A stretch of DNA of 64,000 nucleotides from assembly GCF_033153115.1 (NCBI RefSeq), contig NW_026889779.1:5022001-5086000 (forward strand). Direction: 5' to 3'. The notes under the pieces are model-generated. The model was not told the DNA's origin. It worked only from the letters and a program-made list of their open reading frames with translations, and ran no database searches. This document shows, in pieces, positions 2,477 through 48,114 of this stretch. The position numbers were made by a program, and so were the translations under genes. This stretch comes from Saccostrea echinata (lineage: Eukaryota). Positions within the stretch are counted from its first letter, which is position 1. Every line of letters begins with the position of its first letter.

Positions 2477-3996
2477 ATGAAATATATGGAGATAACGAAC
2501 AGTATTCAAGCTCAAAAGTCCATTAAACAATACAAAATAGGAGCAGAGCAAACACGGACCTCTAAACATCAGAGGTGGGATCAGGTGCCATGGAGGAGTG
2601 AGCATCCCCTGCCGACCGGTCACACCCGCCGTGTGCTCCTTGTCATGATCGGGAAATAACGGAAAAATCCGTCGACAATTCAGTGTGTAAATAATGGCCT
2701 AACAATTAGTATGCAAAACGTCAGTCAGCATATGCCTCAAAGATAAATTGTATTTGCTGACAAGGTCATTGTATCGACCATAGAACTTACGAAATGATGA
2801 CTTTAAACGAGACAGCTGATATTCTTGTTTCATCAACTTGTTTGTCAATAATTCACCTCGTTTTAGAAACTGTTCATACGTAGAGCATGCTCTTGCGTAT
2901 CGAATCAACTGAGAGATATATACCCCGTATGCAGGTGATGAAGGTATATTGCTGCATAAGTAAGGGAAGTTGACGATTGAAAAGTTAAAGTCATCACGTT
3001 TATCATAAAGCTTGGTTGTTAGATTACCATTAACGTCTTTTTCAAGTAAAATATCCAAATATGAAACAGATGTGTCAGACTCTGTAGTATCTTTTATCTC
3101 AAGTTCACCAGGATATATCGTATCGACATAAGAATGAAAATAGCCATTGTTAATTGACAATACATCGTCGATATATCTAAATGTCGAGTTGAAGGCCACA
3201 GCAAGTGTTTTCTTCTTTTCACGTACAAGATTTTGGACAAATTCTGCTTCATATGAATACAAAAAAAGGTCTGCTAATAACGGGGCGCAATTGGTACCCA
3301 TGGGAATTCCAATAGATTGTTGGAAGACCTGGTCTCAAAAAACCACATAGATATTGTCAATCAGAAACTCAAGCATCTTTTTAATGTCAACTTCAGAGTA
3401 CTTGTGTGTACAATCAGAATGTTTTTTAACAAAATAATTTTGCAAATGACCAATGACAAGGTAAGTATATTTACGAGTTCCATTTTTATTGAAAAAGCAG
3501 CTGTCAATGATATCAAAAAGCCTGGACTTTAATTTATCGTGGGGAATGGTTGTGTATAAAGTAGAAAAGTCATAAATTTTTAAGCTGTTGATTTTGGTAA
3601 AATCTTGCGATTTCAAATTTTCAAAAAGTTCCTTGGAATTTTTAAATATCCACATCTGATTTACACCACTTCTCGAATATATTGTTGCACAGTACTCTTG
3701 AAGTTTCTCCTTCACCACTGTTAATATCTTAGTGAGGAGTAAAGAAAGAGGCTTGGTTGAACATTTACTGGAACCCGGTATGTATCTTTGTTTGTAAGGA
3801 TTTTTATGAAGTTTCGGAATCCAATATAAATATGGTAATTCAAATTCATTTTGGTTGTTTGGAATATTCAAAATATTCAAAACTGACATATGATTTTGAA
3901 GAATTTCTTCCTTAGAAAGGGAACTACGAGTATAAGTTGGATTACCACTCGTAGAATTAAATCCAAGTTCCTCTAAAATACATTTGATATAATGAG
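2477..3996 (-). mobile_element. Penelope-like retroelement (Naiad-type), 5'-truncated: RT plus 3' UTR
   Basis: ORFs 3335-3889 and 2699-3301 share one frame, split by a single TGA (GGA in the copy at 24.7 kb). PLE RT motifs: LPYLYWIPKLHK, YDFSTLYTTIPH, GIPMGTNCAPLLADL, FRYIDD, LYDKRDDF, YGVYISQLIRYAR. Confidence 0.93.
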
Positions 3997-6039: not shown

Positions 6040-6140
6040 TCAGTGGTGTATCATAATATTCGTCCTAGCAAATCGTGCCCAGCCATTCCATTCACTGCTC
6101 ATCTGTTTACCTGTGATAGTATTTGATGATACACATATAG
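6040..6140 (+). other. Putative non-coding exon 1 of microprotein gene 1
   Basis: Ends in donor AG|GTAAGT (6141). Homologous to 19090-19227 and 32240-32376, which also end in AG|GTTAGT. The 5' boundary is approximate. Confidence 0.55.
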
Positions 6141-6235
6141 GTAAGTTGTAAAATATTAATTTTTATTTATTTATCTACGTTGTTTCTTAGAAGAAATTTT
6201 TCTTATAAAAAAGTCTAAAAATATACCAAATGAAC

Positions 6236-6429
6236 CACAGGCACTTGGGACATGGACTGATATGTCAGTCGAAAACGAGATATTTAAAAACAGCTCCCAG
6301 AGACAAAAGAGTTACATTATCTATAACATGTAATCCATATTAAAATGCAAAAATAGGGAAAAGGTTGTCAAGCTCCGATTTAAAAAGAAACAAAATTGAA
6401 AGGGGGGGTCTATGCCCCAAGTGCCTGTG
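6236..6429. mobile_element. hAT-like MITE
   Basis: TIRs cacaggcacttgggacat / atgccccaagtgcctgtg; 8-bp TSD aaatgaac / caatgaac; absent from the paralogous position near 19310. Confidence 0.8.
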
Positions 6430-6554
6430 CAATGAACTGCCATCCTTATGTAATATTTGATTGAAATTAATTAGTTCTTAGATGAAGACATCACGCAATG
6501 GAGTAAGGCAATTTACCTATTTAAGAAGTAGGTACGATAAACATTGGTTTATGC

Positions 6555-8514
6555 CAAGTTCAATTTCAAGTTCATTTATTCACTCAAAACCATCTAATAT
6601 ATAAATGGTACATGAGGACAATGAAAAATATTTGCAACATATAAATTCCGGTCAGAGGTACAAGTATATGATATACTTATTCAGAAAATGAAAGTGAAGG
6701 AAGACAAAGAAAAAAAGATGAATACATATAATACATATGTTAATAGTATAAACGAGGAAAAATCATGGAGGACAGACTAGCTCATATATTTTTAATATAA
6801 AAGTACAGAGTTTTTTCCGAGTTTTAGCATCTTGTTTTGTCATTAATTGAGAAAATTTAAGTATATTTGGTCTAGCAAAGTAGTATTCATTTATATACTT
6901 TTTCCTAATGTTTGACAATGAAGTGCATTCATACGGAAGCCGGTAGGTGCCAGGTAGAAAAATATTTTATCTGGCGGCCGCCAGATAAGTTTCTGGCGGC
7001 CGCCAAATAATTATCTGGCGGCCGCCAAATAATTATCTGGCGGCCGCCAAATAAATAACTGGCGGCCCCCAGAAACTTATCTGGCGGCCGCCAAATAATT
7101 TTCTGGCGGCCGCCAGATACAAAGATCTGGCGGCCGCCAGAAATTATCTGACGGCCGCCAGAAAGTTATCTGGCGGCCGCCACATAATTTCTGGCGGCCG
7201 CCAGATAATTATTTGGCGGCCGCCAGATAAGTTTCTGGCGGCCGCCAGTTATTTATGTGGCGGCCGCCAGAAAGTTATCTGGCGGCCGCCAGATAAAATA
7301 TTTTTTCTACCTGGCACCAACCGGCTTCCGTACATTCAAGTATAAAATGGAATTTATCGGCAACATGTTTAGCTTTACAAAGTGTACATAATCTTTCATT
7401 TAGTGGTATACCTGCCCATCTTCCCAGTTCAACTGGTAGACGGTGATTAGAAGTACGAAATTTTACAAGTATTTTTCTAAATTTTAATGGCAAAATGCTT
7501 AAATACTTTTCACATTCAAAGCTTGTTTATACACACCTTTGGATGAACTACATGTATTAATTTTAGCATTCCATTTTTGTATAAATTGATCCTGTATAAT
7601 CGTTGCTTTAGAGCAGTAGTAACCCAATCTTGATTAAGACTATAACAAAACTGTTCATTCCAAATATTAGATAGTCCGCATGAGTCAAAAATGCGATACA
7701 CACAGTCAATCCATGGATTCTTACCAATTTCAGATTGTGAATTAGCGATTAAATATTTATATAATATACATGAAGTTTTGTTTCCGGGGGTATTAATTAA
7801 TTTACACTTACACCAATATGAAACTATTCTAGAATAAACAAGGGCAGATAATGGAAAGCGTCCTGTTTCACCATAAACCATGAAAATTTGGGGTACTACT
7901 TTTCAAGTAAAGTATATGTTTCAAAAATTTTAAATGAACACGTTCAATAATGTCTAGGTTTTCAAAACCCCAGATTTCACAACCATAGAGTACACTGGTA
8001 CAACCATTTATCGAACAATTCAAATTGACATGCTATAGGGCGGTTGAATTGTCTAATTTTTCTGATTACACCATACATTGCTTTTTAGACTTGCTCACAT
8101 AGATGTTTCTTGGCTTTTAAAAAGGAGCCAGATCTTGAAAAAATGATACCAAGATATTTAAATTCTTACATTTTCTAGACTCTTGTTATTGTAGTAAAAT
8201 GTTCTCTTGAATAAAGGACCTTTTGAAAAAATTAATATTTTGGTCTTGTCAATATTAACATGCAATTTTCACTCTGTACAATAGCATTCAAATTCATTCA
8301 AAGCATTCTGTGGATCATCAGGAGTTTCTGCTAAAATGACAGTATCATCGGCATATAAAAGTATTAAAAGTTTCAAATACATACATGTACCTAATTCGTG
8401 TTCTATTGAAGTAGTAAGACTTTGTAGACTAATTATATTTTTATCAACAAGATAATTTTCTAAGTCATTAATGTACAGGGAAAATAAAAAGGAGGATAAG
8501 TTTTCCCCTTGCCG
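6555..8514 (-). mobile_element. 5'-truncated, degenerate LINE (RTE-X-like) in intron 1 of microprotein gene 1
   Basis: Minus-strand motifs RQGENLS..LFSLYINDL, ILLYADDTVIL, MVYGETGRFPL, KFRTSNHRLPVELGRW..ERLCTLC..HFILEC. The 3' end has AATAAA followed by a short-repeat tail near 6555-6580. Confidence 0.85.
6932..7332. mobile_element. Non-autonomous TIR element with internal palindromic minisatellite (IS3EU-like ends)
   Basis: TIRs tacggaagccggtaggtgccaggtagaaaaa / tttttctacctggcaccaaccggcttccgta. The 6-bp TSD cattca (6926-6931, 7333-7338) splits the LINE codons LEC|TSL. The interior is an array of ~20-21-bp units containing tggcggccgcca. Confidence 0.85.
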
Positions 8515-10026
8515 AAACAGTCTATAGCTGGCTGTGTAACTATAATAAATTAGTTAACAAAGTTAAAATTAAGGTAGCTAATTCGTTCCAAATTTCTATC
8601 AATCATTTTTTTATTTGAATTGCTATAAAATAACTCGTATTCTAACTAAAAGGACCATACAAGACATACCTATTTATGCTCATTTTTATACAATGTGTTT
8701 TAGAGCACATATCCCTGAAAATTCAAAGATATACAGATTTCATTCAGTTTTGCATCAAAATACATAATTTAAGGTTGTATTTCATAAAATCAAAAGATCA
8801 CTAGATTCACTTGTAAAGAGACTTCTTAAAACTTTTCAAAAAAAACCTAAATAAATTGAGGTTTAATCAGTTTACTACCTTCAGAAAAAATAAGATACAA
8901 TGTAATGAAATGTTCGTCCTACATGTAAAAGGAACGTAGAACGAAGCTGGGATGTCCTCCAGTTGAAATTTTTTTTTCTTGTTATTTTTTTTCTGGCTGT
9001 CCCCTTTGAAAAAGCAGTGTTACTGTGTATGTTCCCACTAAAGCTACGGAAACATCATATTTTCGATTCCATATCGCTAGGCAAATTAATAACCGGATAA
9101 ACATAGACAATTTTTCAAATCAAAATATTTTTAAAATACTGTGCTCGAACTTGCGCTGCAATTCATAGATTAAGCTTTACGCTAATATGTATAATGAGTA
9201 ATCAATGATAATTCACATTTATTATAGTGGAAAATGGCTGTATAAAATTGTCTTTATCAACACATTTCAATCCACGTGAAGCAATTCTGTTTTTTTTATT
9301 GCTTTTTCCATATAGTAATGCATCAGTAAAGCACAGATGAACAGATTTGATACAGTCAACTTTCACATGATAAAAAGATCACTTTATAAAGTATGCTAAG
9401 TAAATTCTGGTCGAAGTTATTTTGTTGGTAGCTTTATCATTGCAGAGTTATCCCAAAGGAAGAGTTATATAATGATCAAATAAGTTTAATTAAAATAACG
9501 TGAGTATGCCTTTAAATTCAATGGTTATGTTTAATGTCTTTGTCAATCTAATTTTGCAGTACATAAAAAGATCCAAATAGCAACAAATTTCTAAATATTC
9601 CATACGATTTTTTTAAAAAGATGCGGAGAAAATTAGTCAAGATGAATGTATAGGTACAGTACACTTAAATCTTCTAGCAGATGAATAATTTCTGGAAGCT
9701 CTTTGTATCAGATGTTGGTATCTAGCGAAGATATACAATTGAATATGAAATAAATAACATCTAGATCAAGCGGTTCAAACAATTAGCTTAACTTCTTTTC
9801 GCTTTTTCTATCCAAGGAAAAAATTGGTATAGGCAGAAAGGATGAAGTTTATTAATAATATTAGTGATCTACTTTGGTTCAGAACATTCCGTATGGAATA
9901 GAGAAGAAAAATTCAACGAAAGGCACCCAACTAACTATGTCACTATTTTTTTTTTAGAGTCGAACAAAACACGATGTTTCCAGGATACTAAACTTGTAAG
10001 GGAACAGCGTATCCTAAAAAGGATTT

Positions 10027-10275
10027 ATGATTAAACTCGGCAAGATGCACGCCATCGAGATTGACTCGGCAGAACGAGAAAAAATCCCCATGATTCTGGT
10101 GCAAGTATTCATGTTGGGGATGATCTTTCTAGGATTCATCGTCATTTGGCAAATCTACATCATGAATCAATTTCTCTCAGAAATCAGCGAGGAGCTGGGA
10201 AATGGGAAAATACAGCTACAGATGAAGGGTGTGAACAAAGACAGAATCTTAAGAAAAATTATGAATTTAGATTGA
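10027..10275 (+). CDS. Small type II single-pass membrane protein, paralog 1 (82 aa)
   Basis: Charged N-terminus, ~20-aa hydrophobic helix, then WQIYIMNQFLSEISEEL...MNLD. Upstream branch-like actaac and polyT-AG acceptor (exon starts 9958). Frame and motif are conserved in three close paralogs. Confidence 0.8.
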   Translation: MIKLGKMHAIEIDSAEREKIPMILVQVFMLGMIFLGFIVIWQIYIMNQFLSEISEELGNGKIQLQMKGVNKDRILRKIMNLD

Positions 10276-12278
10276 TTTCTTTAAAATATTTTGATGTTTT
10301 TCTTTGCAATTCCCGATCTGATTTAAATTTTTAGAACAAAGCCTATAATAGCTGCAGATCTGTAGCTCACTCGTCTTGTACAAAATGGGATGGACGACCA
10401 TGAATATCTATTTAGATCAAAGTGCTGACGAGTAAGGAACTGTAGCTCAGAGATCGTCCATTTCATTTTTTTTTTTTGCAAGCTAAGTCCATAATAGAAG
10501 GAATACTTAAGTTTTTACAGCATGTAGCTCTCTCTCAGTTACAACAGTTTTAAAACATTCACTTACTTCTAACGTGCTTTTATGTAATTGCTTTAAGGAA
10601 ATATAAGGAGAAAGTTGTCCTTAATCTATTTTAATGCTGAAGTCATAAGCTGGAATCAAAGGTACAGGTATGTACACGCAGATAGTGTAAATGTTATACA
10701 CTACGACTGTTATTAATGAATGTATTGAGTGTCTTGATCTAGAGCTCGGATGCTGTTTACTTGATTCTTGAAAAAATGTTTTGCTCAGAATACTTCGATT
10801 TTAAAGATCAGTTTCCAATACCTTTTTAATAAACAAGATTTTCTAAGGTGTAAAAACATGTATCAAACACATCTATCGTGAAAGATATCTAAAGCCAAAA
10901 AAGAATGCGTTCCTTATAGGCCTCTAACTTTTAATTGTTCCACGACATTGTTCCTTTGGTCAAATACTTTTCTTTTTTAGAATTTAAAATAAGACAAGGC
11001 TAATTTTTTTCCCTATTTCTTCATTAACTGACACGGATATCCACGAAATGTAAAAAGTCGTCCATGTGTTTGAAAATGAATACATCTAGCTAATAAACTT
11101 AAAGCAACTTTTCGTATATAGCAATACTACTACCTTTGTATAATGGCACCAATTCCATTTGTAACAGAATTAACGTTCCCTAGTGTACCCACAATACACG
11201 AAGAGTAACTCATTGATATTTATTAGTAGTTAGTTTCTTTGGAATGTCTGAAAAACCTTCCCTCCCCTCAACAGAAACATAAATTTGCCATTCACCAGGA
11301 GTTCAGATATAACTTTGACTGCTCTTAAAGAGAATATATAATTCAGTGTTTTGTTTATGATCACAGAGTAAAGCTTATTCAGTTGTGAGTAAAATGTATC
11401 ATTAGTAATATTTGAAAATGCATCATATTTACATGGGAACATCAAGCAATAGAATTTGAAAAGTATGTATGATTAGCATTGACTTTTGTTCCAAAATCTA
11501 AAGGAGGTTGCGTAAAGCCGATGATTGAAAATCTAATAATGTTATCTAGAGTCTAAAAGTTTTCAAGATTTTGATTTATTTTATCACATTTTTTTTTTTT
11601 TTTTTTTGAATATTGTGCTCGAACTTACGATATGATTTGTACTTTAAGCTTTATGGTAATATGTAAATGCGTAACCAATGATAATTCACATCTATTAGTG
11701 CAAAATGATTGCATAAAATTGCTTTTATCAAGATATTTCAATTCACTCGTAGCAATTTTGTTTTTATTGCTTATGTCTACATACACGCATGAGTTACACA
11801 GATAAAAAGATACTGAACAGTACAATTTAAAAACTTTAAAAAAGAAAAAAAAAGCACGATTATGCCTTCAAATTATCTAATTATGGTTAATGTTTTTGTA
11901 CTCAATTTAAGTTTGAAGAATATAAAAGCAATATAAACAGATATGCTATACCATTTTCAAAAATAGTCGGAGAAGAAAATTAGTCCCGTCGAATTTTTGA
12001 GGAGACTACACTTTAAATCTTGTACTAGATGAATAATTTCTGAAAGCTTCTTGTATCAGATGGCACAGAATGAACAGGACAAAACTACTTACTATCGAAT
12101 AAATGACACCTTGGCCAAGCGCTTCTTGAGTACTAGTATTAAGAATGGAGGAAATAAGAAACATCAAGCCACTCACATCAATTATGCAACTATTTTTCTA
12201 GAGTCGGATAAAATATAGTATGTTCTAGGAGGATCCTAAATTCAAAAGAAGCCAGTTATCCTGTCCAAAAACGGATAA

Positions 12279-12527
12279 ATGGTTAAATTCGGCAAGGAAC
12301 AAGTGAAGGAGACTGGCCCAGTACGTAAAGAAGGAGAGAAATTCCCGGCGATTCTGGTGCTAGTATTCATGTCGGTGATGTTCTTTCTAGCGCTTGTCGT
12401 CGTTTGGCAAGCTCACAACATGAATCAGCTTCTCTTAGAAATCAACGAGGAGATGGAAAATAGGAAATTTCACGCGAAGGATGTGAACATGGACAAAACC
12501 TTCAGAAAAAATATGAATTTAGATTGA
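12279..12527 (+). CDS. Small type II single-pass membrane protein, paralog 2 (82 aa)
   Basis: Same architecture (WQAHNMNQLLLEINEEM...MNLD); acceptor tttttctag|AGTC at 12201/12202. Confidence 0.8.
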   Translation: MVKFGKEQVKETGPVRKEGEKFPAILVLVFMSVMFFLALVVVWQAHNMNQLLLEINEEMENRKFHAKDVNMDKTFRKNMNLD

Positions 12528-23843: not shown

Positions 23844-26560
23844 TGAAATATATGGAGATAACAAACAGTATTCAAGCTCAAAAGTCCATGAAGCATTACA
23901 AAATAGGTGCAGAGCAAACACGGACCTCCAAAACATCAGACGTGGGATCAGGTGCCATGGAGGAGTGAGCATCCCCTGCCGACCGGTCACACCCGTCGTG
24001 TGCTCCTTGTCATGATCGGGAAATAACGGGAAAATCCGTCGACAATTCATTTTGTAAATAATAGCCTAACAATTAGTATGAAAAACGTCAGTCAGCATTT
24101 GACTCAATGATAAATTGTACTTGCTGACAAGGTCATTGTATCGACCGTAAAACTTACGAAATGACAACTTTAAACGGGACTTCTGATATTCTTGTTTCAT
24201 CAACTTGTTTGTCAATAATTGACTTCGTTTTAGAAATTGTACATACGTAGAGCATGCTCTTGCGTATCGAATCAACTGAGAGATATAAACCCCATATGCA
24301 GGTGATGAAGGTATATTGCTGCATAAGTAAGGGAAGTTGACGATTGAAAAGTTAAAGTCATCACGTTTATCATAAAGCTTGGTTGTTAGATTACCATTAA
24401 CGTCTTTTTCAAGTAAAATATCAAAATATGAAACAGATGTGTCAGACTCTGTGGTATCTTTTATCTCAAGCTCACCGGGATATATCGTATCGACATAAGA
24501 ATGGAAATAACCATTGTTAATTGATAATACGTCGTCGATATATCTAAATGTCGAGTTGAAGGCCACAGCAAGTTTTCTTCTTTTCACGTATCAGATTTTG
24601 GACAAATTCTGCTTCATATGAATACAAAAAAGGTCTGCTAATAACGGGGCGCAATTGGTACCCATGGGAATTCCAATTGATTGTTGGAAGACCTGGTCTC
24701 CAAAAACCACATAGATATTGTCAATCAGAAACTCAAGCATCTTTTTAATGTCAACTTCAGAGTACTTGTGTGTACAATCAGAATGTTTTTTAACAAAATA
24801 ATTTTGCAAATGACCAATGACAAGGTAAGTAAATTTACGAGTTCCATTTTTATTGAAAAAGCAGCTGTCAATGATATCAAAAAGCCTGGGTTTTAATTTA
24901 TCATGGGGAATGGTTGTGTATTAAGTTGAAAAGTCCTAAGTTTTTAAGCTGTTGATTTTGGTAAAATCTTGCGATTTCAAATTTTCCAAAAGTTCCTTGG
25001 AATTTTTAAGTATCCACATCTGATTTACACCACTTCTCAAACATATTGTTGCACAGCACTCTTGAAGTTTCCCCTTCACTACTGTTAATATCTTAGTGAG
25101 GAGTAAAGAAAGAGGCCTGGTTGAACATTTACTGGAACCCGCCATGCATCTGTTTGTAAGGATTTTTATGAAGTTTCGAAATCCAATATAGATATGGTAA
25201 TTCAAATTCATTTTGGTTGTTTGGAACATTAAAAATATTCAAAACTGACATATGATTTTGAAGAATTTATTCCTTAGAAAGAGAACTATGAGTATAAGTT
25301 GGATTACCACTTGTAGAATTAAATCCAAGTTCCTCTAAAATACATTTAATATAATGAGCCTTACAAAGACAATGTTGTTACCTGCTTTGTCGGCAGGGAG
25401 TACGTACGTACTGATCATGTAATCTATCTAATTCTTTTTTCACTTCTGGATTATTGAATACAGAAAGATAGATGGTTCTCATATTGCCCTTCAGTCTTTT
25501 AATGGGCTATTTTAACATACATCTGATACATTTAATCCATTCTGACAAAGTTTCAAGGTCTTCTTTTACATGTCTGGCCCATCGCCTGGCGTAATCCTCT
25601 ACAGAATCCATAATATTTATGAAATTCGGACGCCAGTTGAAGGATCGGGGTTCCCTATATTAAGGACCTTTAAAAATTAGTGATCTAAGGTCCTCATTAT
25701 TAACTATATTTACGTCACCAGTAATAACGTGTCCAGCAGGACTATAGTTACAGGGTGAAAAAGAACATGAACACGATGGAGGATTATGTTTCAGATATTC
25801 GATATCCAGGCACTCTAAAGTTTTCTTGTACTTAAGAATTTGGAAGTAATAGTCGATGTATATTTGTAGGAAATACAAGGTCTAGTCTTTAACTTGAAAT
25901 ATGGTGGAATACAAGACTGGACCTTTTTGTTATTAAGAATATTACTTATATTAACCGCGTCATTTCCTTTGTTGACATATTGAAGTTTTAAAAAAAACGG
26001 ACTGTTTTAGCTGTTTCTTCTTCAGTAAAACTCGGGGGGTTAAAAAGCCTATGATTTGCAATATCCAAAATCACAGATCCGAGCCTATATTCTGGTGTCG
26101 AGTAATCAAAAAATGGACTTTCCTTGACGTTTTCAAGAAGACTATGTAAAAGTTTCAAAGGGACAGAATAAAGTTTGGTGCGAATAAGATGTAGACCTAA
26201 CTGTTGATTTACGTAAGGTAGTAATGAATCAAAAGAGACATCGTGTATTAAAGGTTTATTGTAAAGACCGATGCCCATGACTACGCTTACGTCTCTGTGT
26301 ATGGTTAAAAAGTCCCATCACATTTACATTGTTACACTGTGGACTGGAAAGATTTCCAACACTATCGACATTGTCATTACATCCATAAGGAAAGGCAGTC
26401 CCTAGTTTTCTAATCCAAAATTTTTCTCGTTGTCTACGGAAAGGTGTACTCAGTGATGGACTGTTTGTATGGTGGTAAATTTTTTCTAGAATTCTAACTT
26501 TCATTGACAAAATTGAATGATCAGGTAAAATAAAGTGCTTGTAGAGAAGCTGCTGGCCCC
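23844..26560 (-). mobile_element. Naiad-type Penelope-like element: N-terminal GIY-YIG remnant, CxC linker, RT; frameshifted and 5'-truncated
   Basis: Order on the minus strand: ILEKIY..RRQREKFWIRKLGTAFPYGCND, then PPSCSCS..PAGHVITGD, then RT (GIPMGTNCAP, FRYIDD). Empty site in unit B at ~35638. Confidence 0.93.
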
Positions 26561-26599
26561 TAAATGTTTTATTATTGGTGACAAGTATTTAATTCTGTA

Positions 26600-27241
26600 A
26601 AGCACAGATAAACTACTTTATCTTTTATTCATAATTTTAAACCAGAAGTCTTTGATGAGATTGTTATTTTACTGGTTTATACTGTCATAAATACAAAAGG
26701 AAGCGAAAAGTACTACAAGAACTCAGGATACCTTTTTATAGTTTGACATTTACAGAATTATATATGTATTCTGATAGTTTTTAATCTTGTTAACTAAGAT
26801 TTGTTACCATCAAAAACAATTTTTAAAAATTAGAAGATATACGCAAGAACTTATTAAAGGAATACCTGAGGGCAAAGTGAAGTGAATTGAAGAAGGGAAA
26901 AAGATAACAGAGTATTTTTAAGTTTGGCAAAAAGAATTTCATAAACACAACTAAACAAACTTGTTCAAGACAGTGGTATTATAAAAATAGAGCAATCTGA
27001 AATCCGTACAGAAATTGAAAACGTTCATAAAACTTTATATCTATGTTGTGATGATAAATAAGATGATATTGACTTAAAAGTACATGTGTTTACAATATTG
27101 AGTATATTAAAATCTGAAATCAAGAAACATTGTATCAAGCGGGATTAACAATAATCAAAACTGGAGCTTAAACAACACGTAAGAATATGATAAATGATAA
27201 AAGCCCAGAAACCAATGAATTTACAGCCGAGTTTGATAATT

Positions 27242-27284
<43 letters not shown>

Positions 27285-27816
27285 AAGATATTAGACAGTT
27301 TCTTATCATATCAATAAATAATGGATTCCAATTAAAAGCAAGGAATTGTATAAATTTTTACCAAAATGAGAAAATTAAGAAGTTATTTTAAAAGTCTTCC
27401 AGTATCTTTGCTCAATGTTTTATGCAAAATTGCTTCTACATTTATTGGAAATAGAATGAACCGTATGTTGAATTATCAAACATAGCGCTCCAAAAGGATT
27501 TCTTAAGAATAGATTTATTGGTGAAAATATACGTATAATTTATTATGTACTCCAAAGTGTACATATAAGGAATATACTAGAATTCATTTTGCTCATATTT
27601 ATTTTGAAAAAGGTTTTGATTCAATGTTTTGGAAATATATTTACGAAACACTTTTAAAAAAAAAAATTTGGTTCTGATCTTATCAAATGGATATATGTTC
27701 ATATATAATCTAACTCAAAAATGTTCAATCGAATATGATATATTGTCATTATTTTTCAAAATCTGGTAACAAGGGAATGTCACCAATTGCAAGGGGATCC
27801 TCTCTTTCTCTCTCTG

Positions 27817-27865
<49 letters not shown>

Positions 27866-28360
27866 AGAATAAAGAGAGATGAGGAAAAGTATTTTTACTT
27901 CAATATGCAGATGACACGGTAAAGTTTCTAGATGGTTCCGGAAAAAACCGTAAAGGCGCCTTAGATCTTCTAAATTTGCAGGACTTGAACCAAATATTAT
28001 TAAAACAAAAGCTGCATGGTTTGTTTCGGAAATCACTTGTGGAAACACATTATTTAGTGAAACAGGGCTTCAGTGGACAGTTGAACCCATCACAGTCCTT
28101 GACGGTACATTCATGCTGATCTGGAAAAAGAATATGGAAAGACTAAATTTTGAGAAGTGTCTTCAAAGCATGAAATAGGAGACTATTTCATGGTCCAAAA
28201 GAAATCATATACCTCCATTTGGAAAATTACAGCATTAATAAATTTACTTTTATCTTAACTTACATATTTGTTTATTGTTCTTCCAAAGCCAGACAGAAAA
28301 GGACAAAAGGATAGGAAAAACGTTCCTATAATTTTAATTGGAATAACGAAACAGAACAAA
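26600..28360 (+). mobile_element. Degenerate L1/Tx1-like LINE ORF2 relic (unit A copy)
   Basis: Remnants GFLKNRFIGENIRIIY, FEKGFDS..WKYI, QGDPL, QYADDT, AGLEPNIIKTKA.W. Confidence 0.8.
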
Positions 28361-28374
28361 AAATTAAGATCGAT

Positions 28375-28567
28375 TAATTGATTGTATGTTTTTTATATCC
28401 CGTTCGAGAATTTTTAACTCATATAGAGACTTTTTAAGCTCTCATCCGAAAGGCCTGCAACTTTCACTTCAGAGTGCTGAGCGCTTGTCGAGGGAACAAT
28501 TGCTGCCTTTTTTATCGACTTATGTCAGTCGCGGCCGTGATTCTAACACACGACCTTCCGATCACGG
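28375..28567 (-). mobile_element. Internally deleted tRNA-SINE at the duplication junction
   Basis: Matches 37415-37685 but lacks its central part. Confidence 0.8.
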
Positions 28568-29553
28568 AGATATCAGCAAGTGGAAAATTAGTGGCCGATT
28601 TGACGCATTGCATCGATACATTATGGGGATTACCAAAGGAGGAATATTTGCTCAAATTACCTTCAAAATTTACTCAAGAACAATTCACATAAAAACGGAC
28701 GTTCGTGTTGTCATGTTTTTGTGTGTTTAGCGTGTAAATGAAGCGATACAGTAATTTGTTTCTATGTAATTTTAAATACAAATTTTGAAGTTATTTACAA
28801 ATCTGACCACTATTTTAGAATTGTACTTAATCTATGTTCAATATATCTTTTATTTATCCTAGAGAATTCTATTATGGATTAATTACTAGTATGCCTTTGA
28901 CGTAAATAGTAAGAAAGTGCTTACGAATGTATCTAATAATGAATTTTATGATCATTGTTCTCCGATTTTCCCAAACATCCAAGTAGAATTAAATTTCGAT
29001 TTTAAAGATATAGATAACCTTATCGGGTTTAAAACATACTGTATTTAAATTCTCTTCACCGTAAAACAAAGACTGTTAAATGAATAAAAGGGTAAAAATC
29101 AAACACAAAAATATACAAATATTTCGAATGTAAATATTACCTTGTTAATAGCTGTTTTCTCTAACACGTGAATTAAACAAGTAATGAGGGCCCAAGGGCT
29201 CAGTGGAATATGTCAGTTTGCCTATATGCTCCACAAAATTTGCATTCATATTAAAACGTCTGCAACCATGTGTGACGATGCAAATTTTATGTCTATTTTT
29301 TTTTAAAATCTAAAGTATGTCATTACATTTTAATTTCTCAGAATCTATCAAAATCGGTAATACAAACAGTATCCCGTGATAGTGATGGTATGGAGACAGC
29401 CGTAATGAACAGCATCCCATAATAGTGATTGTATATAGATAGCCGTAAGAAGTTATTTCAGATTTTTTATATACGTTTTCCTTTGATATATCACCACCCT
29501 GTGAGATTTGCTTATCCCAAATTTAAAATATTTTTTTTTAATTCCATGGTTTG

Positions 29554-29857
29554 GTCGCCCGCTGGCGCAGTGCTTAGAGCGTCTGCTCTAGAGTCGCGAA
29601 GTAAGGAGTTGATCCCTACGTCGCGGGTTCGAATCAAACTGTGGGACGTGGAGACCGGCCCTTCGGATGAGACAGTATAAACCGAGGTCCCGTGTCGCAG
29701 TAGGTGATGGCACGAAAAAGATTTCTCACTGCTCAATGGCCGTAAGTGCCGAGTATAGGACAAAACTTGCAGCCCTCCACCGGCAAGTGGTGGCGTCTCC
29801 ATACGAGTGAAAAATTCTCGAGAGGGACGTGAAACAACATACAAACAAAACAAAAAC
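29554..29857 (+). mobile_element. Full-length tRNA-derived SINE
   Basis: A-box tggcgcagtgcttagagc, B-box gggttcgaatc, (caaaa)n tail, 14-bp TSD aattccatggtttg (29540-29553, 29858-29871). Empty site at ~16972. Confidence 0.95.
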
Positions 29858-31588
29858 AATTCCATGGTTTGTACAGTGGAAAATTTCATGAGATAACATC
29901 AAAGTTATGCTAGGTATATTTCAATTTCTATGATAATCTTTTGATGATTTCTTAATCAAATGCTGTATTCATGTTAAAAACAATACTGAAAATCATTTTC
30001 CTTAAGTCAGAATCAACATCACATTACCTAGTACCATATTTGATCATTTTTCCCCCATTCCCATTTTTTCCTATCCCCGGTCGACAGGGAATGTTTACTT
30101 ATGTTTTTGGAGGTACGTATTTGCTCTGCTCCCGATTCGTATTGTTTCAATGGACTTTTAAGCTTAATTACTGTTCGTTATCTCCATATTTCACATAAAG
30201 TTTTATTTCTTGTTCACTATGTAAAATCAGATCAAAAGAGCTTGCAGAGATTATTATGTTTTATCCACAAATTAAACCTGATCAACTTTCTCTAATCAAC
30301 CTTTTTTCCCTTTTTTTCAAAAATGGTATTGAAATTCTGTTTGTATTATGTTGACTATGTTCTTCAGAACTACTATGCATTGAGAAAATATATATATATA
30401 TATACATGTATATATAACATATAACCGGTAGATTTAGAGGCTAATTGTACTCTTGTTTAATCATTTTATTGTATTCATTTCCGATTTACTCTGCATGAAA
30501 AATAGCAACATAGCATTGACTTACTGAAGTTTATATTTTGTGTCCAGAAGCAAGAAAGTTTTGGTATATTTGCAAAAATAAAATGGAGTTGTATAACTTA
30601 ATTATTTATTTTATAACTTATAACTGTTTGTTATCTACAAGCCAAGGGCTTTCTATGCGATCTGCTTCCAAAGGACTGAATACCCTTGACTTGAATATTT
30701 GTCATTAGAAATGAAATTAGCAAATTAAAATTAAAATCATTTTTCCACCTACCGGTAAGTTACCAAAAATAGAGTTCAAATTCTTTTCATGTTACTCGTG
30801 CATTGATATATTGTTAGAGCAATAGATCAAAATTGCTTAGTGTGATCTGATTGTCTGACAAAGGCAATTTTAAGCAGTGAATCTCTAAAAATACTCGTAT
30901 CTGTGCTTAATAGTTGGTTACTCATATATATACACTGTAATATTAGCAAAACACTGCATAAAGAATAATATTTCTAATTAAATGCTTTAAACGAAAACAA
31001 AATCTTGATCAGGGATGGGGAAATTTAAAGAAAGGGATTGTAACTGACCGTACTAAAATGCTTTTTTTTACGTTATAAAATGTACTTTGTTATTTTAAAA
31101 AGATTTTTTTTTAATTTCAAGCATAAAAATATCCATTTAATTAATATTCAATTAAAATCTTATGAAATTACGATTAGATTTTCAACAACTTTGAATTCCA
31201 TTTCTTAGAAAAATTGTTAAAACAAAAGTATCCAGATGCTTCAAGTTGACTCATTTACTAGTAAATTTATTTAATGAATGAACAAATTTATTTATAACTT
31301 ATAATTGTATCAATATTTATGAATTAATAAATATGCTGTAGTAGGTGTTATTTAATTATCATATACATGTTATAACCGGCCTTTGGCTAAGATCAAAGGG
31401 TACTCTCTCTCTCTCTCTCTCTCTAAAAATGAATTTGTAAGATTTTTCAACATCAACAGCTAATCTGATGTCAATCAGAACTAAGTTAATCTTGTCATGT
31501 CCTAGTAGTTTGAAGAAATTATTACCTTTGCGATCTAGAAAAAAGTTTTTGTGATCCTTTTTATTGGACAACTTCAAACTTCAACTGA

Positions 31589-31798
31589 NNNNNNNNNNNN
31601 NNNNNNNNNNNNNNNNNNNNNNNNNNNNNNNNNNNNNNNNNNNNNNNNNNNNNNNNNNNNNNNNNNNNNNNNNNNNNNNNNNNNNNNNNNNNNNNNNNNN
31701 NNNNNNNNNNNNNNNNNNNNNNNNNNNNNNNNNNNNNNNNNNNNNNNNNNNNNNNNNNNNNNNNNNNNNNNNNNNNNNNNNNNNNNNNNNNNNNNNNN
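31589..31798. other. Assembly gap (210 N)
   Basis: Run of n. Confidence 1.
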
Positions 31799-32239
31799 AT
31801 TACTTTTATATCACAACTTCTTATTCAAGATAAAGTAAATGATCTATTTTTCTTTCAATGAATTAAAAACAAAAAAGACAACGCCAGATGCATTGGATTT
31901 ACATATTTTAACAATTATCTTCCAAGAAATCAAGGAATCAGCTAACTTACATAAATACGTATTTGATGTATTTGTAGGGGAAGACGAGGACGAGATAGAG
32001 TTCAATGGAAAGGGTATCCTTTTGTGGAGAAGAATGATCACAGTTTGTGATCTCTTATTCTACTTCTATTCGCGTAAATCAAAACAAATTTTTCAGATAA
32101 ATAGGCATAAAAATAATTTATTACAGAAATAAAAAGTGTTGTAATAACCTTTTTTTAACAAGGTCAGTGACTTTTACTTACGTGTAAGTCGATTTTTTTA
32201 ACTTGACAATATAGACTGTCACTCTCTTTACAATGATTT

Positions 32240-32376
32240 ACCCTGTGGCGTATCATTAAATTCATCCGAGCAGAACGGTTTCAATCGTACATAGTTTTCA
32301 CGTTTACCTGTTATAATTATAACGAGGTCTACTGAAAGTTGCTGAGACAAACTACGCATCGAATGAAAATTTTAAG
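32240..32376 (+). other. Putative non-coding exon 1 of microprotein gene 4
   Basis: Near-identical to 19090-19227; donor GTTAGT at 32377. Confidence 0.55.
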
Positions 32377-35168
32377 GTTAGTTGTGATGTATTAATTCTG
32401 CATTTATTAATCTAGGTTGTTTCCCGGGGGAAATAAAAAAAATTGTGTCAAATAAAGCAATGATCCGCCAAGCTTATGTACATGTAATTTGCTTGACATT
32501 AATTAGCATAAACATCATGCAGTGTGGTAATGTGTTTAACTTGTATAAGAAGTTGTTATGATCACTACATTTGTCTCTATATCTAAATTAATATTATTGC
32601 GTAAATCTGAAGTTAACAGGAATAATAAGAAATACATGTATTTCTTGACCAAATGCATATTAATTGTTATTGTTTAATTCGTGAATCTATGCTATCGTTT
32701 TTAACATTAAATTAAGTTATAAATATATACATGTATCTCTCTTTCAAGACGTCGATATAGATTTATCGACTAAGAGTGACTGTATATAATCACTTTTATG
32801 AAGACATTTCAATCCAATTTTGTTTTTATTGCTGTTATTATGTTTTAATGCATCAGTGATTTAGGTTAAAATGCACTGAACTTTACTTTTTAAAGTTAAT
32901 CTTAAATAGGCCGGAAAAATCATTAATTATCTGGAAGACAAAACGATTTGACGATAAAAATCAAATGCAATGATCCCAAACAGTTCCGTCTTCTTAAATC
33001 AAGGGTTTAGGTCCCCTCCGCTCCCCAGGAAGCGGAGTTGATTAGAAACCCTTAGTTTAAGAGGACGGAACAATTAGAATTCAAATGTTAGAATTTTAGC
33101 TCTTTTACATTTATGTTAATATCAGATTTTCTTATTTCTAGAAACTTATTGTAAGTACTTTAAATCAATGCAACAGTTGTGTTTCCGTCATTATCTTATG
33201 CAAAGTAAATTTAATATAATTCAAAGGAATGATTCTACAAGAATAATTACATGTATATGCCTGAAGGTGCTCTCCCCCTCACACTTTTATGGATTAAAAG
33301 ATGATAAACGGGATAAATTTCCACTCGATACTGGGCGAAAAAAATGCTGAGAATCCCAAATCTTATTGACAATGTTTGATAATTACTGATTCTCTGCTGT
33401 TCTTCATGATAAATTCTGATATATACTAATATTATTACTGTTGTTTTTGATAATTATAGTAGTTTCTGATAAATACTGTCGTCTTTACTGTTGAGTCTGA
33501 TAAATACTATTGCTGTGCTGTCGGTGCTGAAATTTACTAAGAATTACTGTGATTATTGTTCTTGAGCTCAAAAGGTGCTAAAATAAAACCGAGGGCAATG
33601 AAAACATTCTACAATTATTTCTTTCTTTTTTTTTAAATTTAATTATCGCAACGATATTTTCATATTTCTTAAAAACCACTGCTTGTGACAAAAACTCTGA
33701 CAGTGATCTCAGTAAGCATAAGGTTATGAAAAACTTTGACAAATATAATTAAACCATTGAATGAAATTGTCAGTTTTATTTCTACAAGTAAATGTTTTGT
33801 ACGAATTTATGATAATAGTAAGAAGAATAAATTTATATTACAATAATTACAATTATTTTGCAGCTAAAGGGGTCTCGGTTTGATCACAGAAAATTTATAG
33901 GTTAACACTAGAGAATCCCCCACAACTGTTTCATACTGACTATAGACGTAAATTACCAACTACTAACTTTACTGCATGATAAAAGGGATGACTTGGGCTT
34001 TTCCACAGTCAAGTTCCCTCTTATGTAGAAATTTTCCAAAATCACCTGCATATAGTGTTTATAAATGTCTCCCAAGTACCGGGGTAATTCGATACGCAAC
34101 AGCATGCTCTGAGTATGATCCGGCTCACGGCGGATGTGACCGGTAACCAGGGGATGCTTACACCTCCTATGCACCTGATCCTACCTCTTTTGTTTCCAGG
34201 GGTTCGTGTGTTTGCCCTGTTCTGTTCAAATGGAGTTGCACAGTTTCACTTTCACAACAATTTATTGCCCTATTCTTTCAGTCGGTCTCTTTTTTTGTAT
34301 ATACTTAGAAAAACCGCTTCTCTCTTTTATTACACTAAGGACCGGAAAACCTTTGCGTCTCTGATACAGAGACCATTGTGCCGCCTGTGTCAAAACAGCC
34401 ACCATTTTCCAACAAGTAAGATTCCAAACCGATTCATATAAAATACTATAAATTGATATCGATAAAAGAGTTAACTATATAATATATTTTTTTTATTTTT
34501 ACCTTTTGTGGCATTTTTAATATGATATACCGATTTTCAATTGCAATATTTGGTATTGCGCCGCCCTCTTTAATAGGGTTCATCTGTGTTTTAATTAATA
34601 TTTGTCAATTATTTCATTAATTATTGGTGGTTTTATCTATAAAGTTTCATTAATTTATGACATCGTGTTCATATAAAACAAAACTACGTTTGTCTACGGA
34701 ATTTTGGGACAACCCTCTTATATAGAGTGAAAAATGTAAAACTTCACGAACAGAAATGCTACGTTAGAAATATTCATTTGATACTCAGAATTCGATTAAA
34801 GTAGGGATTCAATTTTTGTTACTTCACGACCCCTTGGAGTTAAGGGATCTTTTTTTTTTCATTGGAATATACTTAGAAGGAGAAATGGTGGCTCGATGAG
34901 TGTTGTGGCCCTTGGGTCTTTTGTTTTCATTTGTAATTCACTAGATGTACACTTTATATAAACAAGAAAAGAATCTTGATTTACTATACATGATATATTT
35001 TTATTATTGGTTTAATGTGAAATTATTCAACTCCTTATATAATATACATAGTTGTTTCCGATCTCTCTTTTTCCATCAATAGAAAGAAAACTTTTTCATT
35101 CCTTTTTGCAGAGTCTGACAAAATGTAATACATTTCAAGGATACCAAACTCAAAAGGATATAGCTATT

Positions 35169-35411
35169 ATGCCCGAACACGGATTAATGGTTGAACACAG
35201 TGCAGAGGAACAATTCAAGAAGAATAACTCGGCAAAACAAGAGAAATCTCCGGTTTTACTGGTGCGAGTATTTGTGTTGGTGATGCTATTTGTGGGAATC
35301 GTCATCGTTTGGCAAGTCCATATTATGAATCAACTTCTCCTGGATATGAACGAAGAGCTTGCAAAAATGAAATCACTGACAAAGAATGTGAACATGAACA
35401 AAACCTTTTAA
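35169..35411 (+). CDS. Small type II single-pass membrane protein, paralog 4 (80 aa; C-terminal 7 aa lost)
   Basis: Intact acceptor tttttgcag|AGTC (35111/35112). CAA>TAA at 35409 relative to paralog 3, with the SIMNLD* codons still present downstream. Confidence 0.72.
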   Translation: MPEHGLMVEHSAEEQFKKNNSAKQEKSPVLLVRVFVLVMLFVGIVIVWQVHIMNQLLLDMNEELAKMKSLTKNVNMNKTF

Positions 35412-36824
35412 AGTATTATGAATTTAGATTGATTTCTTTCAGATAGATACATTTGATATTTCGAATTGAAAATGGATTTAATATTGTACAGAGTTGCTTT
35501 TTTTTGTTGAGATTCAAAATCTTGAACCTCTCCTTTACTTAGATATATATGTTTTTAAATGTTATTAATCATGTTTTTTGTTTCGGAATCCTCAAAAATG
35601 TGAAGCGCTAGAAATACCAAGATACTTGATTATTTATAAATGTTTCAATATTGGTGACAAGTATTTATTTCCGTAAAGCGCCGATAAACTACTTTATCTT
35701 TTATTCATAATTTTAAACCAGAAGTCTTTGATGAGATTGTAATTTTACTGGTTTATTCTGTCATAAATAAAAATGGAAGCGAAAAGTACTACAAGAGCTC
35801 CCGATACCTTTTTATAGTTTGACATTTACAGAATTGTATATGTATTCTGATGGATTTAAATCTTGTACTAAGATTTGTTACCATCAAAAACAATTTTTAA
35901 AAAAATTAGAAGATATACGCAAGAACTAATTAAAAGAATACTTGTGAGCGCAGAAGTAAAGTGAATTGAAGAGGGGGAAAAATAACAGAGTATTTTTAAG
36001 TTTGGCAAAAGATTTCATAAACACAACTAAACAAACTTGTTCAAGACAGTGGTAATATAAAAGTAGAGCAATCTGAAATCCTAGCAGAAATTGGAAACTT
36101 TCATAGAACTTTATATCCTCGTTGTGATGATAAATAAGATGATATTTACTTAGAAGTACATGTGTTTAAAATATGGAGTATATTAAAATCTGAAATCAAG
36201 AAACATTTTATCAAGTGGGATTTACAATAACCAAAACTGGAGCTTAAACAACACGTTAGAACATGATAAATGATAAAAGCCAAGAAAGCAATGGATTTAC
36301 AGCCGAGTTTGATAATTCATTTTTTTTTTGGAAGATATTAGACAGTTTCTTATCATATCAATAAATTATGGATTCCACTTGTATATATTTTTACCAAAAG
36401 GAGAAAACCAAGAGAATTAAGAAAAATGTCTTCCAGTATCTTTGCCCAATGTTTTATGCAAAATTTCTTCTATATTTATTGCAAATAGAATAAGCAGTGT
36501 GTTGAATTATCAAATGAAGCACTCCAAAAGGATTTCTTAAGAATAGATTTATTGGTGAAAATACACGTATAATTTATGATGCACTCCAAAGTGTACATAC
36601 AAGGAATATGCCAGCATTCATTTTGCTCATATTTATTTTGAAAAAGATTTTGATTCAATGTCTTGGAAATATATTTACGAAACAATTTTTTTTTAATTTT
36701 GATTCTGATCTTATCAGACGGATATATGTTTTTTATAATCTAATTCAGCTATGTGCAATCCAGTATGATATATTGTCATTAATTTTTCAAAATACTGGTA
36801 ACAAGGGGGTGTCACCAAGGAGAT

Positions 36825-38111: not shown

Positions 38112-38985
38112 AATTTTTGGTTCACCTCGACGAAGTCGAGATGAGCTTATCCTATACCCCCGACATTAGCGTCAGTGTCGGCGTCCCGGTTAGGTAAGTT
38201 TTAGGAGCAAGTCCATTCCGAAGTAACTATAAGCCCTACCTGGACCAAACTTGCATGGATGCATCATCTAGGAATGAACACTACCACTCTTGCTTCGGAT
38301 GCTGGATCTGACCCAGATTTTCCAGTTGAATGACCAGGTTAAAGTTTTTGGATCAGGTCAATTCCCAAGTAACTATTAGCCCTACCTGGACCAAACTTGC
38401 AAGGATGGTGTATCTAAGGATGGACACTACCACACTTGCCTCGGATGCTGGATCTGACCTAGATTTTCCAGATGAGTGACCAGGTTAAAGTTTTCGGAGC
38501 AGGTCCATTCCCAAGTAAATATTAGCCCTACCTTGAACAAACTTGCATGGATGATGCATCTAGGGATGTGTTTGCTCTGTACCTATTTTGTAATGTTTAA
38601 TGGACTGTTGAGCTTGAATACTGTTCGTTATCTCCAAATATTTCACCTACATTTTCCAGATGAGTGACCAGGATAAGGAGTAGCTATACAACATTATGGC
38701 CTGTTATGATTAAACTTGCATAGATGGTGCATCTAAGGATGAAAACTTCCAGACTTACTTTGGATGTTGGAACTGATCAAAATTTTCTTGATTAGTAAAC
38801 AGGATAAACTTTTTTGAACAGGTCTCTTTCCAAGTAATTGTAAGTTGTACTTAAACCAAACTTGCATTGATATTGATCTTGGGATGTACATTAATTAAAA
38901 AAAAAGAATATGATGTTAAATTTGCCTTACTTAAAGATAACATTCGTCGAGGTGAGCTTCGAAATCTTTGATTACTTATGTTTTT
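38112..38985 (+). mobile_element. Helentron-associated (HINE/pearl-like) element with ~146-bp tandem repeats
   Basis: Subterminal inverted motif tcacctcgacga / tcgtcgaggtga, GTC-rich short repeats and T-rich flanks. Anchor aagtaa(c/a)ta.tagccctacc at 38221, 38367 and 38513. Confidence 0.8.
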
Positions 38986-40451
38986 TGAAAGCAATATTTC
39001 ATGTATTTTAAGATTTTTTGAGTATGATAACACGCGACTCGAACCAAGGAGATATTCTATTGGAACCTCTGTTATAATAATAAAATTATAGTTTAAAATA
39101 AGTATGTATATTCAAGACCATTGTATGAAAAGGGATTCATTTTATTTGGTAATTTGTTAGACATTAATGGTAAATTGATGAGCTCTGATGATTTGTCTTA
39201 AAATTCCCATTCATTCTATGCAAATAATAAAAAGAGCAAGAAATTTGAACATTAACTCAAGACATCAGAAAGAACAACGAACGCTAACTCTCGATTCCCG
39301 CCTACATTTTAAACCCATTTAAATCAATATAACTTGAATTGAGGCCATTAAAACTTATTTTAATACAAAGAATAGTACATAAGTAATTGATTTATTTATT
39401 TAAAACTAGCATCAAAAAGTTGTTTTATTTTACAATTCTTTTCTTAAAGGGGTGAAAGACTTTATCCATTGAAATCAGGCTCTAAAAATCAGCAAATTTT
39501 CAAATATGCATGGAAATTGATAAATGACCCTTAAATCTTTCCGTATGTTAAAATTGTGTAAAATTCAATGTACAATATTGCTAAAATACATTTTTTAAAT
39601 GTGTTATGTCATTTGAAATCGGTAAAAAATGTCCATTTTTGCTGATTTTTTGCCTGTAAACATATCCCCCCCCCCCCCCCCCCGTGAAACACAAAAAAGC
39701 TTTAATTGGTATGAATTTGTACAAAATAATACTCCATAATACCTGTAAAAAGGATTTTTTGTTTCACTGGGGTGGATATTTTTTAAATGTTTTCCGTTTT
39801 TCGTTGATTACTATAGTAAAAAAACGCAAGTTTGACCAAAATCATAGAGTTATAATTCTTTGTTTTTTTTCCAAATAAGTTATTATTTATGAAAATTCAC
39901 ATAAATATATCTATAAATATAAAAATTCATTCAAATATGTTATCTTTTAAAAATTGACTTGGAGTTAAGCGGCAGAACAATACTATCGTTCGCAGTTCAA
40001 CAAACAAATATTCACTATATTTTGAAAAGTGTACGAGTTATGTTCCATTACACATTCGGATAAAAGTCTTAGATTTTTATCCTTCACAAAAACCGATTTC
40101 TCGAGCGACTTATTGAAAAATTAAGGTTTAACCTACAGGAACAGGTGAATGCGGATGAAAATTTAAATGCAGCAGGCGTTTGCGGAAGACTTAATGAATT
40201 ATTATTAACTTTCTTGAGTGTAACATGGAGTTTGTTTGCATTTCGCAAGTGACCGTGATTCATAGCCATATCGACCCTCGCTCTATCAACATATACTCCA
40301 CTGGAAATGTAAATAAAAGATCATTCACAAAAGCAGTGTCACGTGGAGATTACAAATTAAACTGTCCCCATTATTGACTACAGAATTTATTTAAATACCC
40401 TCGTGGTTTGCCCTACTACCTCAGATTTCTTGTAAATTTTTGATATTAGAA

Positions 40452-43970: not shown

Positions 43971-44004
<34 letters not shown>

Positions 44005-47862: not shown

Positions 47863-48114
47863 ATTCATTAAAACGGTATAGTATGATCAGAACATGGGTA
47901 AATCTCTTTTCTGCACTTAATATATGGACATTGACGTAAAAATACATTAAAGAACCTTTAATTTTTCTAAAGATACTGTTTATGGGGAAGAAAATCTCAA
48001 ACTTAATTTGTAGTATTCGGAGAAAAACTGTGTCAGATATTTTTTTCTTTGACTATTTTGATATCCTGGGCTACGTACTATACATAAGTTTCCTTCATTC
48101 AATGAAGCACTATG

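Follow-up and report, generated by a model that had tools for sequence, protein, structure and literature searches.

An unannotated, lineage-restricted family of small membrane-protein genes in the oyster Saccostrea echinata

A 64,000-nucleotide stretch of the Saccostrea echinata genome (contig NW_026889779.1, positions 5,022,001 to 5,086,000; C30:5022001-5086000, hereafter the window) contains several short open reading frames (ORFs) that resemble one another, and the question it raises is whether these are genes. A preliminary description, made from the letters of the sequence, had proposed a five-member tandem family of type II membrane microproteins with a coiled-coil segment, encoded by four ORFs on the plus strand and one on the minus strand. 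We find that the plus-strand ORFs belong to a real, lineage-restricted family of unannotated small membrane-protein genes (family A), which in the searches run comprises this oyster and a few relatives. The best explanation overall, and one that we consider likely, is that S. echinata carries five tandemly duplicated two-exon genes with an mRNA of about 1 kb that encodes a one-helix microprotein.

The ORF lists confirmed frames at 10027-10275, 12279-12527, 23413-23664 and 35169-35411 on the plus strand and at 14167-14493 on the minus strand. The four plus-strand ORFs are paralogues and can be aligned end to end at both the protein and the DNA level. W-Q, M-N-Q, E-E and V-N are invariant among them, and MNLD followed by TGA terminates the copies at 10027, 12279 and 23413; positions, shared residues and endings were thus all found again in the alignments. 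Searches of the 923 Mb S. echinata genome with single proteins and with a profile returned exactly five family A copies, all on the plus strand and in one 61 kb cluster. The fifth lies at C30:4996072-4996317, 26 kb upstream of the window. It is referred to as copy 0, and those at 10027, 12279, 23413/23422 and 35169 as copies 1 to 4. All five matched the family A profile with E values of 1e-28 to 1e-32. Membership of the minus-strand ORF was not supported: in profile-profile comparison (hhalign) the alignment was limited to 21 residues where the helix ends, at a probability of 1.4-2.9%, and both [WY]-Q-x-H and IMNLD are absent from it. The proposed five-member family therefore held for its four plus-strand copies, while the minus-strand ORF belongs to a second family (family B, below) and the true fifth member lies outside the window.

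Copy 2 (12279..12527, 82 amino acids (aa), seen in the ORF list and in one RNA contig) is a tandem duplicate of copy 1. Copy 3 encodes 80 aa when read from the homologous ATG (23422..23664), with a further in-frame ATG at 23413. In copy 4 (35169..35432) the ORF closes at a premature TAA; DNA alignment showed a CAA>TAA change seven codons before the end, with the lost SIMNLD codons and the old stop still readable in frame downstream. Copy 4 is probably a decaying or truncated copy.

Transcription was examined through public sequencing runs. Five runs, from two studies and under two organism labels, shared words with positions 9800-12800, and four of them were aligned to 6600-12599; this evidence covers the region of copies 1 and 2, together with letters specific to copy 0. 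Contigs from all four runs tiled 9950-10805 without a joint, and none lay on 7400-9800. Contigs starting at 9950-9955 (X1, X2, X3 and X5) carried 5' letters foreign to the locus, which matched 6108-6137 exactly and nowhere else in the window. These leader letters, a GT donor (TATAG|GTAAGT at 6140/6141) and an AG acceptor (a T-run, then AG at 9956-9957) form a canonical splice, which indicates that the runs hold RNA. Copy 1 thus has a non-coding leader exon, the 3' part of which occupies 6090..6140, a GT..AG intron at 6141..9957, and a terminal exon at 9958..10805 with a 5' untranslated region (UTR) containing a short upstream ORF (uORF), the 82-aa coding sequence (CDS) at 10027-10275 and a 3' UTR. 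The contigs were colinear through the stop codon and for about 530 nucleotides (nt) beyond it, with no downstream joint and with AATAAA at 10828-10833. A leader and a single terminal exon up to AATAAA give an mRNA of roughly 1 kb. The gene model is therefore a short non-coding leader, an intron of about 3.8 kb, and one terminal exon that holds the whole CDS of 80-82 codons and about 0.55 kb of 3' UTR. The transcripts on which the preliminary description had made its family depend were present, as spliced contigs in four runs from two studies. A genome search found only two copies of the copy 1 leader, one each for copies 1 and 0, and a retrocopy is thereby excluded.

Expression was not confined to copy 1. 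Within single runs, X2 and X3 contained contigs identical to copy 1 alongside contigs whose differing letters were often those of copy 0, indicating that both genes are expressed. Copy 2 was matched by one X2 contig (12135-12518, 96% identity) and is probably transcribed. The nine 5' letters that precede 12135 in this contig matched nothing in the window, and a motif search found no leader-type core between copies 1 and 2. Copies 3 and 4 are also preceded by the leader core GTTTACCTGTNATA. Alignment with the copy 1 leader and a motif and donor search predicted the conserved parts of their plus-strand leader exons at 19153..19227 for copy 3 (donor TTTTAAG|GTTAGT at 19227/19228) and at 32302..32376 for copy 4 (donor at 32376/32377). 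Public S. echinata RNA-seq sets from 2018 (embryos and larvae, whole adult) and from 2025 (visceral ganglia, gonads) are described in PMC12564202; these years agree with those of the runs used here, but a link between them is unconfirmed and we claim no tissue.

Some further observations concern these transcripts. An X1 junction contig (9950-9957) had about ten extra letters (TTAAA and a T-run) between leader and exon and a G>A change in the leader, and may represent an allele with a slightly different 5' UTR junction. Short uORFs are present in the 5' UTR of the coding exon, one of five codons in copy 1 (9972-9989) and ATG-TAA in copies 3 and 4 (23376-23381 and 35125-35130). Contigs were also found past the copy 1 poly(A) signal, at 10816-11418 and 11209-11780, and one X3 contig had a 116-letter foreign 5' part at 11461. 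These could derive from read-through, from a separate transcript or from the upstream structure of copy 2. Within the copy 1 intron, contigs covered a repeat at 6932-7332. It contains a 22-nt palindromic tandem repeat (6967-7296, 15 units, consensus TTATCTGGCGGCCGCCAGATAA), and contigs piled up on it, three runs reaching depths of about 30-160 and a single X5 contig 260; many of the contigs had foreign letters on both sides. It is likely a dispersed, transcribed hairpin repeat.

The transcript structure bears on the possibility that a larger gene uses the ORFs as its first, or as alternative terminal, coding exons; such a gene might encode a type II receptor that carries a lectin, C1q or TNF domain at its C terminus. 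Many type II receptors start with an exon of this kind, the window holds no separate leader exon for copy 2, and NCBI models the neighbouring family B gene with a far-downstream exon. However, the stop that follows IMNLD has been kept in every copy and in the foreign relatives described below, whose contigs are only about 1 kb, and the copy 1 contigs pass from the CDS over 530 nt of 3' UTR to just before AATAAA without a joint. Onward splicing to a known domain (C1q, TNF or lectin), which had been named as an outcome that would overturn the first reading, was thus not found in these contigs. We regard a larger gene as very improbable.

Alignment of the copies indicated that the frame is maintained as a coding frame. 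The gap runs within the CDS are 3, 6, 6, 27 and 6 bases long, all multiples of three, whereas those in the 250 bases on each side are mostly not (1, 2, 4, 5, 10, 11 and so on). Frame-preserving indels inside the ORFs, in contrast to those of the flanks, had been part of the preliminary description and were confirmed at the DNA level. The coding frame contains one stop per copy (two in the copy at 35169), and the other frames contain 9-10 and 1-3. Together with the transcripts above and with the dN/dS of the older pairs and the relatives described below, these indels mark the family A ORFs as genes rather than chance ORFs.

Ratios of non-synonymous to synonymous change (dN/dS, Nei-Gojobori estimates) depended on the age of the pair. 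Comparison of copies 0-2 with copies 3-4, the old lineages, gave 0.24-0.63, and copy 2 against copies 0 and 1 gave 0.76-0.85. The youngest pairs gave 2.3 for copy 0 against copy 1 (18 non-synonymous to 2 synonymous changes) and 1.3 for copy 3 against copy 4 (11 to 2). The pairwise check that had been suggested for the family therefore came out low in the old lineages and at 1 or more in the youngest pairs. With the young pairs pooled, an omega of 0.24 was rejected (p 4e-6) and neutrality was not (p 0.2); positive selection is accordingly not claimed for them. Since these young duplicates are compatible with neutral drift, some copies may already be pseudogenes. Between copies 0 and 1, 8.1% of CDS sites differ, against 3.8% in the 3' UTR (p 0.014) and about 7% in the wider flanks. 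None of the 15 residue differences between these two copies falls in residues 39-50 or 72-82. The family is thus constrained at the juxtamembrane and the C-terminal motif, with free or driven change elsewhere.

The start of the ORF has also changed. The ancestral start is retained in copies 3 and 4 as M-S/P-E-H-G-L (MS-E-H-G-L in copy 3). In copies 0-2 the codons of this start can still be recognised, but they have lost the ATG and gained a stop, so translation must begin at the next ATG, six codons later.

These changes raise an alternative, in which the loci are transcribed as long non-coding RNAs or have recently become pseudogenes, and the ORFs are left over from a gene that once coded for protein. 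The dN/dS of the two youngest pairs, which does not differ from neutral, is in keeping with it, as are the missing ancestral start codon of copies 0-2, the nonsense codon of copy 4, a mutated acceptor in copy 3 and the lack of any annotated family protein. Nevertheless, three copies that have diverged by about 25-30% in DNA retain full ORFs, frame-preserving indels and both motifs. The older pairs have dN/dS values of 0.24-0.5, the differences between copies 0 and 1 spare the two motif segments, and relatives in other samples keep the length and both ends of the protein. Non-coding or decayed transcripts are therefore an unlikely account of the family as a whole, and maintained protein-coding genes remain the preferred one.

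How the copies arose could be read from their surroundings. Copies 0 and 1 were carried by a segmental duplication of 20-25 kb, with 91-93% identity near the genes. Copies 1 and 2 stem from a stretch of about 1.2 kb that is repeated in tandem at a spacing of about 2.3-2.5 kb (the unit at 9128-10335 pairs with 11602-12589), and a duplication of about 9-12 kb gave copies 3 and 4. The flanking DNA is a mosaic of segmental duplications and transposable element (TE) copies, in agreement with the heavy disruption noted at first. An assembly gap at 31589-31798 precedes the copy 4 leader exon, the end of which is at 32376, and is separated from the copy 4 ORF downstream by about 3.4 kb. The gap crosses no family A ORF or exon, so no reading frame depends on it, and the sequence on either side of it is colinear with the paralogous segment, with orientation retained. 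Together with the losses described above, family A shows birth-and-death evolution.

An ORF carried by a TE or by a virus-derived insert would also be found in TE-rich surroundings such as these, and one family member had a sub-threshold match to the baculovirus family Ac76. However, the copies spread by large segmental and tandem duplication with their flanks included, which is not a TE pattern. Dispersed copies were not seen: the genome of 923 Mb holds only five, which share one strand within a single cluster of 61 kb. The genes have an intron and a leader exon, and the Ac76 match is confined to one of ten members and lies below the Pfam cut-off. An origin of this kind is scarcely credible, and tandem duplication of a two-exon gene accounts better for the locus.

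The family proved to be missing from protein collections. A word-indexed protein search with the five copies found no similar protein, and none of the family A ORFs was present in an exact look-up in a collection of 15 billion proteins. The same collection does include the NCBI protein of the neighbouring family B gene on the same chromosome, and the family A genes thus appear to be unannotated as proteins, as had been suspected. When 1.84 billion representatives were scanned with a hidden Markov model (HMM) of the five copies, three small proteins of 94, 98 and 126 aa emerged (E 1e-8 to 5e-5); E values improved to 1e-20 to 1e-30 once relatives were added to the profile. Two long repetitive proteins that also scored were disregarded. 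The relatives fall into eight clusters of unnamed proteins predicted from Logan and ENA assemblies. The contigs that carry them measure about 0.9-2.5 kb, which is the size of the family A mRNA.

The relatives (P0002/P0006, P0003/P0027, P0005/P0034 and P0043-P0046) resemble family A in length, start, helix and ending. Those of 86-87 aa start with M-S-K-[HN]-G-L and have one helix followed by [WY]-Q-x-H and a terminal I-M-N-L-D and stop. They differ from the window copies in sequence, with 25-36% identity, and in prolines (P-Q-P) in the middle of the tail. The longer cluster forms carry on with W after IMNLD, from which we infer that a gene caller translated the stop codon TGA into W. Copies 0-3 and all foreign relatives combine [WY]-Q-x-H with a terminal IMNLD and stop (copy 4 is truncated before IMNLD), and the proteins are 80-87 aa long with a single hydrophobic helix in the first half. 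The description of a fast-evolving, lineage-restricted family of small single-pass proteins is supported by these data.

Searches for known families were negative. A Pfam scan of all members returned only sub-threshold, single-member matches, which were rejected as driven by helix composition: Ac76 (PF05814, 17.8-18 bits against a cut-off of 22.5, one of ten members), FtsL (PF04999 / PF19579, 14.5 bits against 22.9, one of ten members), mitoregulin (MTLN, PF22002, 13.3 bits against 27) and DUF2232. The family profile had no match below E 0.48 among PDB sequences, and the best ESM Atlas scores (0.83 and 0.79) were within the chance range. The initial failure to recognise a known family therefore held in Pfam, PDB and the ESM Atlas. 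Baculovirus Ac76 and bacterial FtsL do resemble family A in architecture, in that they are small and bitopic, about 80-100 aa long, and have an anchor helix at the N terminus with a helical stretch behind it; given scores below the cut-offs, we take the likeness as composition-driven rather than as kinship. Mitoregulin, FXYD proteins (PF02038) and phospholamban/sarcolipin are of similar size with one helix. Such single-pass microproteins regulate larger membrane proteins and have often been missed by annotation, and they serve as the model for the accessory role proposed below. Their tail after the helix is very short, whereas family A has a 40-residue tail with a conserved C-terminal motif and falls far below the Pfam cut-offs.

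Family A proteins have a charged head of 20-30 residues, one hydrophobic helix of 19-23 residues, [WY]-Q-x-H directly after the helix, and a tail of about 40 residues that ends in I-M-N-L-D. The Kyte-Doolittle hydropathy of the helix is 2.6-3.15 over 19 residues. There is no cysteine in the window copies and one each in two foreign relatives, and family A has no conserved glycosylation site. In the copies of this genome 2-4 K/R residues lie on the N-terminal flank of the helix and none on the C-terminal flank, which favours an N-in orientation. The type II topology first proposed is thus likely on charge bias in these copies, and ambiguous in the foreign relatives.

AlphaFold2 (10-row alignment) predicted one continuous helix over residues 20-79, with a mean predicted local distance difference test score (pLDDT) of 70, and of 85-93 in the membrane part. 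The tail showed no significant 3.5-residue periodicity in averaged hydropathy (p 0.85), and the relatives from other samples carry P-Q-P in mid-tail; the coiled-coil reading is accordingly not supported for family A. We divide the tail into a short helix next to the membrane, a variable linker and a conserved peptide at the C terminus.

The minus-strand ORF proved to belong to a family of its own. B1 (14167..14493, minus strand, 108 aa) has a basic head, one helix, the motif I-Y-K-S-N-Q-Y-L-N-E-L and a longer helical tail. A paralogue search found three further copies (L015, L016 and L017; C30:4972660-5021915), all on the minus strand in the same region and 56-83% identical to B1. The four family B copies are 107-114 aa long, and L016 has a TGA five codons early. 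The two families share a layout of head, one helix and helical tail, the local pattern I-Y-x-x-N-Q-[FY]-L-x-E, and a gene structure of leader and single CDS exon with an acceptor 35-70 nt before the ATG; in the B genes a conserved pyrimidine tract and CAG acceptor lie about 35 nt before the ATG. Family B differs from family A in its strongly basic head (7-8 K/R in 15 residues), its longer tail, an N-x-T site and the absence of IMNLD. Its tail has weak heptad periodicity (p 0.028), and K/R counts of 7-8 against 1-2 on the helix flanks make it clearly N-in.

B1 corresponds to NCBI LOC133196242, an uncharacterized protein of 123 aa and the only B copy in the protein collection. The NCBI model leaves the ORF at R-L-Y-R-K|GTAAAC for an exon at a distance of 14.3 kb. 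This exon overlaps the next B gene at its 5' end, and the model is likely a read-through. Gene order along the cluster is B4(-), B3(-), A0(+), B2(-), A1(+), A2(+), B1(-), A3(+), A4(+). This interleaved order indicates that B and A genes lie head-to-head and were duplicated together.

A possible reading, which we put forward tentatively, is that the family A protein would act as a signal-anchored (N-in) accessory subunit. The helix and its polar W/Y-Q-x-H face would dock onto a partner membrane protein, and the flexible tail would hold out IMNLD, on a tether, as a short motif for binding on the luminal or outer side. Rapid evolution outside the two motifs would fit a fast-evolving partner, for example one in immunity or reproduction. 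The head-to-head family B protein is a candidate for that partner, although a doubtful one. A more speculative extension is that A and B might be partners in a two-component membrane module specific to oysters. The B(-)/A(+) gene pairs would be co-regulated from the DNA between them, and the two small proteins would come together by way of their helices; the module would diversify as recognition systems do (self/non-self, gamete or antiviral), by tandem duplication and positive selection, with the invariant IMNLD as the output motif.

Several points weigh against the account of family A given here. Copy 4 carries a premature stop, the homologous acceptor of copy 3 has changed from AG to TG at 23363-23364 (another AG lies 2 nt on), and the recent duplicates are indistinguishable from neutral drift. 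The RNA nature of the runs was deduced from the splice junction and the exon-only cover, and the evidence for the genes is at the level of DNA and RNA. In the foreign relatives K/R residues are about equal on both flanks of the helix, which leaves their topology ambiguous. A homodimer prediction for copy 3 scored 0.02 against a mark of 0.32 and gave no verdict, and is not evidence for or against self-association.

Other features of the window were recorded. Three copies of one repeat (2477-3996, 23843-25358 and 46832-47873) are 85-95% identical and contain ORFs of 173-200 aa without a Pfam match; the copy at 23843 starts 180 bases past the stop codon of copy 3, and a reverse-transcriptase fragment lies at 46956-47228. 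On the plus strand, 40440-45000 and 52858-58061 hold a paralogous pair of multi-exon genes with a signal-peptide exon and an NRF domain (nose-resistant-to-fluoxetine type; PF20146, E 6e-11). These are tandem duplicates, the block at 42985-44332 matching 55910-57582. Satellite-like arrays occupy 59619-60535 (138 bp units, 6.4 copies) and 38196-38568 (146 bp units, 2.6 copies).

The present value of these results lies in annotation and evolution rather than in mechanism. They provide a clean case of real protein-coding genes that are missing from every protein collection searched: the five of family A and, apparently, three of the four of family B. The motif set ([WY]-Q-x-H and the C-terminal IMNLD), combined with the model of a leader and a single CDS exon, offers a means to recover the family in other oysters. 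Fast-turnover tandem clusters of small bivalve membrane proteins are candidates for immune or reproductive roles, which makes them relevant to aquaculture species such as S. echinata.

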